64,000 nt of DNA from Amoebophrya sp. A120 (GCA_905178155.1 CAJINV010000008.1:930001-994000); one strand, 5' to 3'. Shown: positions 32,198 to 55,675, numbered from the stretch's first letter. A program made the numbers and translations. The notes: a model not told the origin generated them from the sequence alone.

Positions 32198-35119
32198 ATG
32201 ACGTCGAGTGCTATCACAACCGTTTCTGCGTCACCACTTGACGCGTATTTGCCATTTCTTATGGTTTTCGGAGGCTGTTGCCTGGCGATGGTATTTTTCG
32301 AAAAGGCTTTGAAACAGGATCCGGGAAGCGGCAACTTCCTTACCTTCACCGAGCTCTGCTTTATCGCGCTGGAAAATCTGCCCCGGCGGTTTATTTTCGG
32401 CCGGAAAAATGAGGGTGGCGGCAGCCTGATCACATTCCAGCCACTGGTCGCCGCAAGATCGGATCACCTAAAGCATGCCGTCTTGTTCGTCAGCATGAGT
32501 TGGCTAGTCAACTACGCGTTTTCCTTCAATATCGCCGTACCCATTTATGACACTGCAGAACTCGGCCGACCTTCATTCTTGCTTCTGGCGACTGGCTTCG
32601 TACGTTGTCGTTTTATATATTAGGGCTGTGGCGATTGACAGTGTCTACTTCTCTGAACAAGGGCTTGCTTCCTTCCACGTACTCGTGAAGGACAAAATTT
32701 TTTATGTCAATATCTTTCTATGAGAAGTGCTGCAAGAGTTGACAACCTTCAGCACGAATTTGAAACGCATCATGTACCCCGAGCTAAAAAATGCAATTGC
32801 CAGGAGTAGCGGGCGAGTCGAAAGCCAGGAAAGAACGCCGTCGGTCGTAATTTTTTTACAGCCATGCCAACCACACCGTCGTGCGATCATGCAATGTCGT
32901 TGCGACATTGCTAATTGGCTTTTTCTTGTATCCAGTCGAAAGCTTCGGCAGAAAGTCTTTGGGATTACAACTTATTGCACTCGGTTTGAATATGTTATGC
33001 TAAAAAACGTGTTACGTACACGTATCCGTGTTACGATCCTAATTCGTATCGTGTTTCTAGTGGTACAAGCAACTCCATTCAAAGCCTATGGTCCATAGAC
33101 CGATAATGATTAGGTATTGCGGAGCCGCCGGGGAGGTAGGATTAGTTGCAGTTTTTTGGCAATTTGTTGTTTGCTTCTGGTGGAAACCGAAGACCGAAAC
33201 GGGAAACAAGCTCTGCGTTGTGTGAGTAGATAAATCTTTCCCAGAGTAGTATGGTCCATAGTACTTACGTAGAGGTCAGCCTTTATCTTGATCTTATCCT
33301 GTCGAAGTTTTTGCAATTTTTGTCATACGTTTTTTCGATGTACCTATTCCAAGACGCAGTGCGTAGCGTCGGTGCTGGTGACGATCGGAATTCTCCTCGC
33401 TACTCTAGCAGACGCAAAGGTCGTCGCGGCTTGCCAGAATGTGCCAAGTGTGTGGCAGTGCCTGTTTCCGCAGGGAGTACCAGAGTCTGGGGCCGCGGGA
33501 AACGATTCGTTTCTTGTTTGGCTGGTCGGGATACAGGTACTGCTTCTCTGTCTTGTCACGCAGTCGTTCCTGGGTCACATACAGCGCAACATGTTACGAA
33601 AAGTGCTGCCATGCGTTGCCCATGAATGAAATGGAGGTTCTGTCTGCAATCATGATAATACCAGGCTCGCACAAGAGCGACGGAGTTCCGCATGTGCTGT
33701 GGTTCTTGCACGCCTCTCAGAAAAATAAATGCCTCTACCTATGGTCGTTTTTTGTTGACATTATATCGGTTACCTTGCATTTGATGCCCACCCTGAGGAC
33801 ATCATATCACTTTGAGGCTTACCCTACATGAATCTGTGCGGGAAAGGAGCAACATCTTATACGAAAAACAGAAAATTTCGAGCCGTTAGCTATCATCTAC
33901 TCGTACTCCTCTGTTGCAACAAGCATGGTGGATTTCTCATTTGCATACGACTACGATCCTTACCTCCAGCGGGAGCAGGAACCCAAAGTTTCAAAGAACG
34001 AGCTTGCAGAGGAGTTTCTTTACACCTCATCCATCGCGTCCCTGCTCGGTTGCGTCGTGTTCTGGGACGAGATCAAACTTCACTGGGGTATTTATTTTGT
34101 GGACATGATTCGGAAAACGAAAAACAAAAATACGATTTGATGAATCGAAAACCAAATGTGCATAATGAAAAATTCCATTTGTGACAAGTAAGCTGCAAGC
34201 ATGTAGAAGTATGTGGTTAACGCAGGTAACGCGTGGGCCTCTCCGGCAGCTTTTACACTGGACCTGCCGGCCGTCGTGCCCTCGTTGATGTCCTCTGGCG
34301 AAAATGGCGGCAACAATTACATTTCTGTGAGCATCCCGTTGCAGTGGTGCTACATTCTCGCAAACAACGTGGCACAAGCTTGCTGTCTAAAAGGTGTTTT
34401 TTACCTCTCGACCCGTTACTCCGCGCTCACGGTGTGCTAGCAAAACTTGAGTCAGGTCGAGGAGAGAATTTTCTTCTCTGATTTACCAGAAGCATGTTTG
34501 TAATTTGGGTAAGTATTCCTATGTATTTCTTTCCTGTTAAATTCGGGTACACCACCATCAACATGCAGGTGCGAACAAAATGAAAATTCTAGTTCCAACT
34601 GATTCAGGATTTTTCTAGGATTCCGTGTGAACATCACGCTTTCGATGCGGAAATTTTTTACCGTGGTCTTCTCGATTCTGTAGTATCTCTCGAAAACCGC
34701 ATGAAGCAGAAGCGCGAGCCTTGGTTGCATTCTTTCTTTCTCTCGCGCGAATCGGTATCATGAGAAAGAGGATGTCAAAGACAAATTCAACCGAGGCGTG
34801 TGTTTATGCTCAGTGCAGCTTTTCATTTGATGCGTACTTTCAGAATCCTTGGTCCCTGCAGCACAGCGTCGCGGCCCTCTTCGTTTTTGGTGGTGGATTG
34901 CTGTACTCGAGCGGAGAACTTCTTTTCAGCAGCATGAAGAGGCTTTATTCCGCGAGGACTGCAGATGAAGACGCAGCTGCAGGTGCGGATATCTCCGAAA
35001 AGAGCAGTGCGATAGGCACGCGAAAGACCCCGGCATCGTCCGCAAACGACGGCAGTAGAAATGCTTCGGGAAAAGAAAGAGAGCTGAATTCTTCATTGGA
35101 AATGAAAAAGACGAAATGA
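32198..35119 (+). CDS. UAA-family nucleotide-sugar transporter (SLC35B4/YEA4-like); join(32198..32544,32871..32927,33332..33593,33952..34087,34226..34431,34627..34682,34837..35119)
   Basis: Reconstructed motifs VFGGCC, GNFLTF, VNYAFSFNIAVPI|HTVVRSCN, CLKGVFYL, SALT|VNITLSMRKFFTVVFSIL|YFQNPW and a C-terminal KKTK ER-retrieval motif. Five TA-type introns and one GT-AG intron. Confidence 0.8.
32545..32870 (+). other. Decayed TA-type non-canonical intron
   Basis: CCATT|TATG ... CATG|CCAAC; joins VPI|HTVVRSCN, matching the SLC35B4 PLHxxFRS motif. Confidence 0.8.
32928..33331 (+). other. Decayed TA-type non-canonical intron
   Basis: TCTTG|TATC ... CATA|CGTTT; in-frame join LLIGFF.|FRCTYSK. Confidence 0.6.
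33594..33951 (+). other. Decayed TA-type non-canonical intron
   Basis: CATGT|TACG ... CATA|CGACT; join GHIQRNM|YDPY. Confidence 0.7.
34432..34626 (+). other. Decayed TA-type non-canonical intron (GT...GT)
   Basis: Residual TIR TGTGCTAGCAAAA / TTTTCTAGGATT; join SALT|VNITLSMRKF. Confidence 0.75.
34683..34836 (+). other. Decayed TA-type non-canonical intron
   Basis: TGTAG|TATC ... GATG|CGTAC; join FSIL|YFQN. Cutting after the fifth base of the duplication would create TAG. Confidence 0.8.
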
Positions 35120-54100: not shown

Positions 54101-55675
54101 CTTACCGCAGAACTAGACTTTTTTTCTGCAACTACACAAGTAGAACGAACATTGATTCATCAAATTACCAGGCAAGCGATACGGGAACCTGAAAAACGGG
54201 GTGGATGATATCAAGAAGTGCAAATGGTTCGCCGCACTGGACTGGGAGTTGCTGCTGCAGAGAGAAATTCCTTATGCAATGCATCAAGGGGCGTGTGGGT
54301 GTGTGTCGTGTCATCATTGACTGTCTCATGTCATTATCGTAGAGATTGTTTGCGAAGTTTTCGACGTTGTTGCGCAGTGACTACGAGTACGATGTGGAGG
54401 TGCCACTGGAGAGCGTATCATGGGAGTACGTTTAAGCCAGCTGTAAGCTGCAGAAGACGAGTTGTGATTATGATCCATCTCCATTATGCATGAGTTACTT
54501 ATGTTGACCTTGACTTTGACACATAGACCCACTTGCGACTTGCAATGCATACTTGTGCTCCCTACAAGCCACAGGTCAAGTCGGCAACGGACACCAGTAC
54601 TTACTTGTTTTTCTGTGCTCAACTTGAACTTTCTGAATCTAAGTAACCGAAGTACATAGTTCGATAATTGGTTTGCGGGCATGAAGAAGAAGATCGGTCA
54701 TCGACCGTTGCAAATCGAAATACAAAATGCAGAAGAACGTGGTTAACTACAAGCACACGACTGTTGATTCGTTGTCGCTTGGTACGATGAAGATGATGAG
54801 TATTAATGAGTAAGTTTACGGATGAAAGTTTTTCTATCAGTCGTAAAGTGGCGGTAATGCTGCATGAATACACACAGCACGATCATGAAGAAGTAGGATG
54901 TGGTCCAGACTGGGAATTATTTCGCTGAAACACATTAAGGTAACTTCGAGGAGTACCCGGAGAGCGAGGAAGTGCAAACACCACGTTGCTCTCTTACCTG
55001 GCCCCAAAACTTGGAAGGCCAGGGAACAGAGTGCCGTGGTGTTTGGGCCAACTTTGTTTGGGCCGACGGGGCCTTTTTTCCTTCCAAACGCCATGCTATG
55101 CTCTTACCTGGCGCCAAAACTTGGCAGGCCAGGTAAGAGAGTGCCGTGGTGTTTGGGCCAACTTTTTTTGGGCCGATGCGGTCTTTTTTCCTTCCAATCG
55201 CAATGCTATGCCCTTACCGGGCCTCAAAGTCTGGAGGCCCAGGTAAGAGCACAGCGTGGCGCTTGTGCTTCAAGAGTGTCTCTTTCATCTGGCCACCTCC
55301 TCAGGCCAGGACGTTTTCGCATCCCAAGCACCACACTCCTCTTTTACCTGGCCCCAAAACCCGGCAACCCAGGTAAGAGAGTGCCGTGGTGTTTGGACGA
55401 ATTTTTTTTGGGCCGATGCGGTCTTTTTTCCAAGCGCCACGCTATGCTATGCTCTATGGTCTACGGTGAGGGACCGAGACGCCCTTGCCCTCTCTCCTCC
55501 GATCACGGCTTAGGGCGTGTCGGGTGGTTGGTTCAGATTGATAGGACGATAGGAACGAAGCGAAATAGCTGAAACACATTAATAAGGTAACTTCGAGGAG
55601 TACCCGGAGAGCGAGGAAGTGCCGCCGGAAGTGTCTGCAGCATCTGATCCCTTCGCTGACTGGAACGATCACTGA
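51129..55675 (+). CDS. PKAc: cAMP-dependent protein kinase catalytic subunit; join(51129..51161,51529..51681,51825..51913,52163..52232,52560..52649,52905..52936,53052..53172,53488..53541,53819..53942,54172..54271,54556..54596,55587..55675)
   Basis: Assembled [23 protein letters not shown]|[21 protein letters not shown]|F, IYRDL|[38 protein letters not shown]|[18 protein letters not shown]|SNFEEYPE and DPFADW. Six GT-AG and five TA-type introns; the first exon is the least certain. Confidence 0.92.
51162..51528 (+). other. Probable decayed TA-type intron (PKA intron 1)
   Basis: TATGC...GCATA ends; links ATG 51129 in frame to LAIKDFDLG, which is otherwise closed by an upstream TAA. Confidence 0.6.
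52233..52559 (+). other. Decayed TA-type intron (PKA intron 4, AT...GA)
   Basis: CCGAA|TATC ... GATA|CCGAT; join KVGR|FEDG. Confidence 0.9.
52650..52904 (+). other. Decayed TA-type intron (PKA intron 5)
   Basis: TTTGA|TACG ... GATA|TCTGA; splits the catalytic loop YRDL|KPEN. Confidence 0.92.
53542..53818 (+). other. Decayed TA-type intron (PKA intron 8)
   Basis: CCCAC|TATCCTACGTAAAA ... TTTTGCTTGGGATG|TCCGC; splits GYP|PF. Confidence 0.9.
54272..54555 (+). other. Decayed TA-type intron (PKA intron 10)
   Basis: TIR TATGCAATGCA / TGCAATGCATA; join REIP|APYKP. Confidence 0.87.
54976..55455. repeat. Array of about four hairpin-forming units (110-130 bp spacing) between duplicated PKA acceptor/exon starts
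   Basis: Units start at ~54991, 55101, 55211 and 55341 (CTCTTACCTGGC...GCCAGGTAAGAGAGTGCCGTGGTGTTTGG...). The array is bracketed by a direct repeat at 54924-54975 and 55568-55622. Confidence 0.88.

Follow-up and report, generated by a model that had tools for sequence, protein, structure and literature searches.

A fixed splice register and a short asymmetric sequence code in non-GT-AG introns of Amoebophrya sp. A120

Introns without GT-AG ends in Amoebophrya sp. A120 are cut in one fixed register with respect to the introner element they contain, 1 nt before the TA with which the element starts and 4 nt after its other end. This was established in a stretch of 64,000 nt (GCA_905178155.1, CAJINV010000008.1:930001-994000; hereafter the window, with positions counted from its first base). 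Among the genes on the + strand between 32 and 55 kb of this window are a nucleotide-sugar transporter similar to SLC35B4 (32.2-35.2 kb), the gene after it, labeled as GT32-like in an earlier reading made from the DNA sequence alone (the sequence-only reading; 35.8-38.9 kb), and the gene for the catalytic subunit of PKA (51.5-54.7 kb). Previous work on this strain has established that about 65% of the introns supported by RNA-seq are non-GT-AG, and that its introners have inverted repeats starting with TAT, direct repeats of 3-5 nt and strain-specific families; no splicing signature was found, the splice sites were described as variable relative to the hairpin, and the position of the border was left as unknown (PMC7789003). 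The elements and their removal are thus already published for this genome, and what is new is the rule formed by the fixed register and the asymmetric code that goes with it. Our observations coincide with those on the A120 and A25 introners in the removal of non-GT-AG introns (seven joints here), the TAT repeats, the 5-bp duplications and the presence of multi-copy families along with singletons, and differ in that the border is here located to the exact nucleotide, along with a short asymmetric code (PMC7789003). A literature search found no later paper fixing the register.

All the RNA evidence consists of contigs of two sequencing runs, X1 and X2, which were aligned to positions 32380-38379 of the window. 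Four runs of one study contain around one fourth of the words of window 32150-38149, a proportion that fits exon-only content. The X2 contig (1520 nt, depth 34.9) and the X1 contig (1678 nt, depth 25.1) show 100% identity to the window and skip eight segments, corresponding to seven non-GT-AG introns and one ordinary GT-AG intron of the SLC35B4-like gene (34088-34225, + strand, GTATTT...AACGCAG; joint 34086|34225, with GT..AG at cut +1). The fact that the latter is skipped supports the identification of the contigs as spliced RNA. No reads from the raw RNA runs X9 and X10, which carry the same species label, could be placed on positions 32380-38379.

Joints are written here as last exon base|first exon base, with ambiguity given as the count of further placements to the right that fit equally well, and k stands for how many bases the mRNA retains from the left 5-mer (the 5 nt preceding the TA of the element). 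When the values of k allowed by each of the seven non-canonical complementary DNA (cDNA) joints, all of them on the + strand, are put together, a single one is shared, k = 4. The first intron of the SLC35B4-like gene (32545-32870, TTATGA...CCATG-CCAA) is flanked by the 5-mers CCATT and CCAAC, and its joint, 32544|32871, has no extra placements and allows k = 4 only: the mRNA reads CCAT followed by C (ATC, Ile), the left copy contributing four bases and the right copy the fifth. The sequence-only reading had placed this cut most plausibly at base 4 or later, so that the cDNA turns out to be stronger than what had been claimed. Together with this joint, k of at least 4 is set by the third intron of the same gene (33594-33951, TTACGA...GCATA-CGAC; 5-mers CATGT/CGACT; joint 33593|33952, one extra placement, k = 4-5) and by a degenerate element intron (34432-34626, GTGTGC...GGATT-CCGT; joint 34431|34627, three extra placements), for which the leftmost placement is the k = 4 register. 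The upper limit, k of at most 4, is set again by 32544|32871 and by three more introns: the second one of the transporter gene (32928-33331, GTATCC...GTCATA-CGTT; 5-mers TCTTG/CGTTT; joint 32925|33330, two extra placements, k = 2-4), that at 34683-34836 (GTATCT...TTGATG-CGTA; 5-mers TGTAG/CGTAC; joint 34679|34834, three extra placements, k = 1-4) and the first of two in the GT32-like gene (36887-37293, ATAGGA...CATGATA-AGTA; joint 36885|37293, one extra placement, k = 3-4). The second intron of the GT32-like gene (37679-38062, CTAGGC...GCGATA-AAGA; joint 37677|38062, two extra placements) allows k = 3-5. In the case of 34683-34836, it had been pointed out from the sequence that a cut after base 5 creates an in-frame TAG; k = 5 is indeed excluded by the cDNA, as is k = 0. 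Examining cDNA junctions over diverged duplications had been proposed as a check on the rule, and in the two genes covered the offset of 4 is the one common to the seven.

In this register, the six RNA-verified introns of the TA type read N-T-A...A-T-R-NNNN, and the probability that the six would match by chance in an allowed register, once the ambiguity of the joints is allowed for, is about 1e-14. The seventh, 34432-34626, reads N-T-G...A-T-T-NNNN. It retains T+2, A-7 and T-6, with G at +3 and T at -5, and its inverted repeat (..CTAG.AAAA) is in register with the k = 4 placement, which identifies it as a decayed member that keeps those three letters.

Protein conservation extends these results to other genes; for this, the spliced gene models were compared exon by exon. 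In the PKA gene (+ strand), the exon following the intron at 52233-52559 (ATATCG...GTGATA-CCGA; 5-mers CCGAA/CCGAT) opens with the Phe of the GRF motif, aligned to the Phe of PKG and, by residue numbering, to that of PKA. Since k = 5 would place Ile instead of the conserved Phe (GRI), k cannot exceed 4, as the sequence-only reading had argued. At 54272-54555 (TTATGC...TGCATA-CTTG; 5-mers TTCCT/CTTGT), k of 4 or more gives Pro (IPAP) and k = 3 gives Arg (IRAP); the earlier proposal of a cut at base 4 or later is plausible in this sense, the aligned position being variable in PKA and the bound on k weak. The intron at 52650-52904 (ATACGC...CTGATA-TCTG; 5-mers TTTGA/TCTGA) joins YRDL to KPEN, with copies that differ synonymously and are uninformative on k, and that at 53542-53818 (CTATCC...GGGATG-TCCG; 5-mers CCCAC/TCCGC) joins GYP to PFVDEEP, all registers being synonymous. 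Two further introns were located in the gene for UDP-xylose synthase (UXS), 20 kb past the window. The exons flanking the first (L006:570-874; 5-mers ACTAG/ATCCC) align to human UXS1 with exactly one residue between them, which is Tyr (TAC) at k = 4 only, while k of 3 or less gives Ser or Pro and k = 5 an in-frame TAG; in the human protein this residue is a conserved Tyr. In the second (L006:1707-2019), k = 5 gives TGA, so that a stop codon rules out k = 5 in three introns in total. The flanking 5-mers of the older introns have decayed to 1-4 matches out of five, 1-3 being near chance: the position of the cut relative to the ends of the element persists, and the duplication does not. Of the 26 TA-type introns to which the sequence-only reading applied the rule, 11 were checked in the window, and the rest, in weakly conserved proteins, are candidates.

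Thirteen introns, 154-407 nt in length, were tabulated in the k = 4 register (the seven with RNA evidence, four from the PKA gene and two from the UXS gene). Position +1 is occupied by any base (T in four, G in four, A in three and C in two), +2 is T in all 13 and +3 is A in 12, the sole exception being the decayed intron at 34432-34626; +4 is T in eight, C in three and G in two. Near the other end, -8 is always C or G, -7 is A and -6 is T in 13 of 13, -5 is A in nine, G in three and T in one, and the last four bases are free. It had been proposed from the sequence that T+2 and A-7 never vary and that there is no constraint on +1 or on the last four bases, and the tabulated introns bear this out. 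Twelve of them have TAT, TAC or TAG...ATA or ATG ends, and the set departs from the GT/GC...AG pattern of major (U2-type) introns, with four bases found at +1 and the last two free. The nine predominant non-canonical classes listed for A120 in the genome paper, where they were left uninterpreted, are all NT-NN (Table S4 of PMC7789003), which fits T+2 genome-wide; the classes published for strain A25 are TT-NN. The ordinary GT-AG introns examined all start with GTA; six out of ten have A at -7, marginally over base composition (p ~0.03) and in numbers too small to generalize.

The code is not symmetric. In the inverted repeat of young copies, +2 pairs with -5, +3 with -6 and +4 with -7. Position +4 has changed in 5 of the 13 introns and -5 in 4, and their respective partners, -7 and +2, in none (Fisher one-sided p = 0.02 for +4 versus -7). 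Drift in +4 and -5, and never in -7 or +2, indicates that reading of the conserved letters takes place on the RNA strand and that they are something beyond inherited transposon ends.

The explanation that we favor, with some reserve, is that the major spliceosome of the organism itself removes these TA...ATR transposon introns in the fixed register. Exons would have been invaded by small DNA transposons whose inverted repeats have the ends TA(T)...(A)TR and which duplicate 5 bp of the target, and their RNA copy is excised as N plus element plus NNNN, with the loss of one copy of the duplication and restoration of the frame at any site. The code would be read on the RNA strand as U+2 A+3 at the 5' end and S-8 A-7 U-6 R-5 near the 3' end, the machinery ignoring +1 and the last four bases. 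Removal is attributed by inference to a major spliceosome for which U1 small nuclear RNA (snRNA) was not found. Given that ordinary introns start with G-T-A, N|UA looks like a normal 5' site without the requirement for G. The 3' site would be placed at a fixed distance from the S-A-U-R signal, and not by AG, as had been suggested in the sequence-only reading; this suggestion is in line with the intron at 36887-37293, which ends in ...GATAAGTA and where the AG at -4/-3 is left unused, as expected for a 3' site set by position. The A-7/T-6 signal may be a 3' motif recognized by a protein or an snRNA.

A different pathway could also give these junctions: structure-guided excision independent of the spliceosome, in which, after pairing of the inverted repeats in the RNA, cuts would be made by an endonuclease at fixed offsets from the end of the helix (1 nt on the 5' side and 4 nt on the 3' side) and the exons sealed by an RNA ligase. 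We consider it unlikely, even though inverted repeats are found at many introns, such a process requires neither GT nor AG, U1 was not found, and an open reading frame (ORF) combining RNA_ligase and AAA_33 domains is present at positions 1-2025 of the window. There is also a precedent in euglenids, where +4 to +6 of the intron pair with -8 to -6 and circular products are formed (PMC11282704). The behavior of the terminal pairs can be argued both ways. Counting wobble, +2:-5 is kept in 12 of 13 introns and +3:-6 in 13 of 13, and the changes from A-5 to G (three introns) and from A+3 to G (one intron) retain wobble pairing. However, +4:-7 is broken in five of the 13 and A-7 is invariant; the lack of any compensating change at -7 counts against a pairing requirement at +4:-7, and two base pairs are insufficient to guide a nuclease. 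Besides, the terminal helix is absent from the predicted fold of four out of ten introns, three of these four being confirmed by cDNA, and their register is unchanged: a long hairpin is unnecessary. The N|TA motif at the 5' end is, moreover, the GTA start of ordinary introns, and a ligase with a kinase domain is the tRNA ligase expected in any eukaryote. A bulge-helix-bulge geometry of the tRNA type was also considered and rejected, because both cuts are at the same end of the helix.

It would be rather improbable, in turn, that T+2, A+3, A-7 and T-6 were simply the inherited ends of the transposon (TAT...ATA), unread by splicing, and that the register had some other cause. All young copies do have TAT...ATA ends and perfect 5-bp duplications, and any register fixed by the element would display the same letters. 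Neutral decay, however, is expected to be equal on both arms, and the older introns have lost the identity of their flanks and have drifted at +4 and -5 with T+2, A-7 and T-6 unchanged. Finally, that the register is not uniform and each intron is cut somewhere in or near the duplication, as drawn in the genome paper, where Fig. S23 shows a distance of 1-5 nt between inverted repeats and splice sites (PMC7789003), is very hard to sustain: all but one of the seven cDNA joints allow 2-4 placements, but a single common k emerges with its lower limit in three introns and its upper limit in four, one intron is unique at k = 4, stops bar k = 5 in three, and the published spread is the outcome to be expected of an aligner where flanks are identical.

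Returning to removal by the spliceosome, the identity of A-7 can be considered. That it is the branch adenosine, a candidate role deduced from the sequence, is speculative and, in our estimation, somewhat less than an even prospect. An A followed by a pyrimidine at -7/-6 matches the usual branch context, and four introns have no other A from -8 to at least -15. The complete version of this idea, a spliceosome with no detectable U1 that needs neither G+1 nor AG, cuts at U+2 A+3, branches at A-7 and ligates 7 nt downstream, is more doubtful still and we put it forward only tentatively.

With regard to the machinery, inspecting it for altered residues had been proposed as a further check. U6 is canonical, with ACAGAGA, and present in at least seven identical copies across several contigs. 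U1 was not found by a genome family search, a weak negative. Searches of the same type, in which only the best first-look candidates were scored, did not find U12 or U6atac, and these negatives are likewise weak. The published analyses of Amoebophrya agree in finding neither U1 nor the minor snRNAs U12 and U6atac; in them U2 was reported as present, and SF1, U2AF65/35, PRP8, SLU7 and PRP18 are listed as present in Table S6 (PMC7789003). The U6 genes adjoin a signal recognition particle RNA gene (L001:1501-2372, L002 and L003), and in two of these three loci a tRNA gene is also adjacent. The ORF at positions 1-2025 (+ strand), which runs off the left edge of the window, contains an RNA_ligase domain (PF09414, E 7e-20) and, after it, an AAA_33 domain of the kinase-like kind, and by this domain layout appears to be a healing-and-sealing RNA ligase of the tRNA type.

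Several points weigh against the proposal of a relaxed spliceosome acting in a general, fixed register. We know of no precedent for a spliceosome accepting any nucleotide at +1. Upstream of A-7 only -8 is conserved, with no U2-pairing sequence seen in the 13 introns, and U2 itself was not located, either with the family search or with two core patterns of U2 and a subsequent cmscan of 17 loci, which is again a weak negative. A clamp of two base pairs acting together with +2/+3 may still operate. The RNA evidence consists of assembled contigs from two runs, covering two genes, and the RNA nature of the runs is a guess; contigs hide minor isoforms, and rare alternative registers are possible. 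The case for generality comes from 13 introns within about 55 kb and from the NT-NN classes already published, and the two tests done at genome scale gave no signal. In the first, a 264-kb scan (the window plus C8:994001-1194000) for pairs of duplications and inverted repeats in which the terminal three bases were not used, the excess over the control was limited to around 20 young symmetric TAT...ATA copies; older introns were undetectable by this procedure, and thus the asymmetry test could not be scaled up. In the second, ORFs were joined to obtain a profile of offsets, and the 4.8 and 6.8 million candidate pairs showed no peak above background, since this GC-rich DNA abounds in spurious open frames.

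Comparison with other systems helps to place these introns. In U12-type introns the 3' site is defined by its distance from the branch site, the terminal dinucleotides are loose and the 5' site is /RTATCCTT, similar to the N|TATCC with which several of the present families start. In contrast to them, +1 is free in A120, most introns lack ATCCTT, only two of the 13 start with N-TATCC, and U12 and U6atac were not found, this being the weak negative indicated above. The introns of Giardia and Trichomonas have a fused branch/3' splice motif with the branch A about 7-8 nt from the 3' splice site; those introns, unlike the ones described here, keep GT (or CT), AG and a long conserved motif, while here only S-A-T-R is conserved. 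Group II introns, to which the sequence-only reading had drawn attention, have a bulged branch adenosine 7-8 nt from the 3' end. The analogy holds for the position of the A and goes no further, since there are no domains V/VI and no Rfam family reaches the threshold in the window; the GUGYG start is also missing (with one chance GTGTG), and the introns are 154-407 nt long.

The nonconventional introns of euglenids (Milanowski 2014, 2016; Guminska 2018, as reviewed in PMC11282704) are similar in that they probably derive from miniature inverted-repeat transposable elements, lack GT-AG, have repeats resembling duplications at their junctions, and pair at their ends at a constant distance from the two cuts. 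The geometry is different: in euglenids +4 to +6 (CAG) pair with -8 to -6 (CTG), leaving 3 and 5 nt unpaired, whereas in Amoebophrya pairing starts at +2:-5, leaves 1 and 4 nt unpaired and is often lost past 2-3 bp. In euglenids, release takes the form of circles and comes after removal of the conventional introns (PMC11282704). The non-canonical introns of Fritillaria and Oikopleura (PMC13326754; PMC11282704) share with those of A120 the massive escape from GT-AG, linked to introns derived from transposons and to an altered recognition of splice sites (U2AF, U1, U6). They differ in that they retain terminal patterns, such as the AG-A(N) quoted for F. borealis (PMC7789003), while in A120 there is no constraint on the terminal bases and the code is internal to the intron.

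Young copies of the elements, with TAT...ATA ends, perfect 5-bp duplications and inverted repeats of 10-32 nt, were also found. One of them (window 46786-47064, TATCCTGAGT...ACTCAGGATA) has an inverted repeat of about 32 nt and a perfect duplication of ACCTC, and a second copy of the same family is located at 62615-62899, with the duplication ATCAA. A genome search with this family gave 3125 first-look candidates, and the 40 copies scored were mostly 97-99% identical, which suggests that the family is probably still active. The same type of search with the intron at 37679-38062 detected itself only, with no relatives. A larger element of 1096 nt, with TTAGGGAGG...CCTCCCTAA ends and a perfect duplication of ATGCT, was observed at C8:1075720-1076815; TTA-type ends such as these have been described for strain A25, not A120 (PMC7789003).

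Other observations were made in the window. Two low-depth RNA contigs, 32971-33199 (depth 4.1) and 33610-33814 (depth 2.8), lie entirely within two of the element introns, the spliced mRNA having a depth of 34.9; their source may be precursor RNA before splicing, excised intron that is stable, or carried-over DNA. In the PKA gene, the intron at approximately 52927-53047 has GT-AG ends (GTAGAT...ATTCAAG), yet it is element-like in reading N-T-A...A-T-N-NNNN, and some introns classed as canonical may be element insertions whose flanks by chance provide G and AG. The GT-AG intron at 51912-52162 of the same gene has a 5-nt direct repeat on both sides (AGGTA/AGGTA) and is cut 2 nt into it, so the repeat itself provides AG|GT, a distinct route from insertion to intron. 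At the 3' end of this gene (around 54600-54660), at the DTS/FDNW junction, splicing at the direct repeat AGTAC would create a stop; the last intron (around 54600), left out of the tabulation, may depart from the simple rule, or a further small exon may be present. An assembly gap of 100 N occupies positions 9882-9981.

The genomes of Amoebophrya are an extreme case of introns without recognizable splice signals, and a rule that is exact to the nucleotide turns the absence of a code into a short code open to testing. Since what is removed is the element plus 5 nt, a transposon can enter any codon without harm to the gene, and those annotating these genomes gain a means to place tens of thousands of ambiguous junctions. 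The question is now posed on named introns, namely whether they are removed by a spliceosome with relaxed requirements, which places the 3' site by a ruler, or by a pathway of its own guided by structure, and it bears on the origin of new introns in eukaryotes. If a spliceosome with no detectable U1 and with such a ruler were indeed responsible, a TA...ATR transposon that duplicates 5 bp would make a perfect intron from the outset, whatever its target site.

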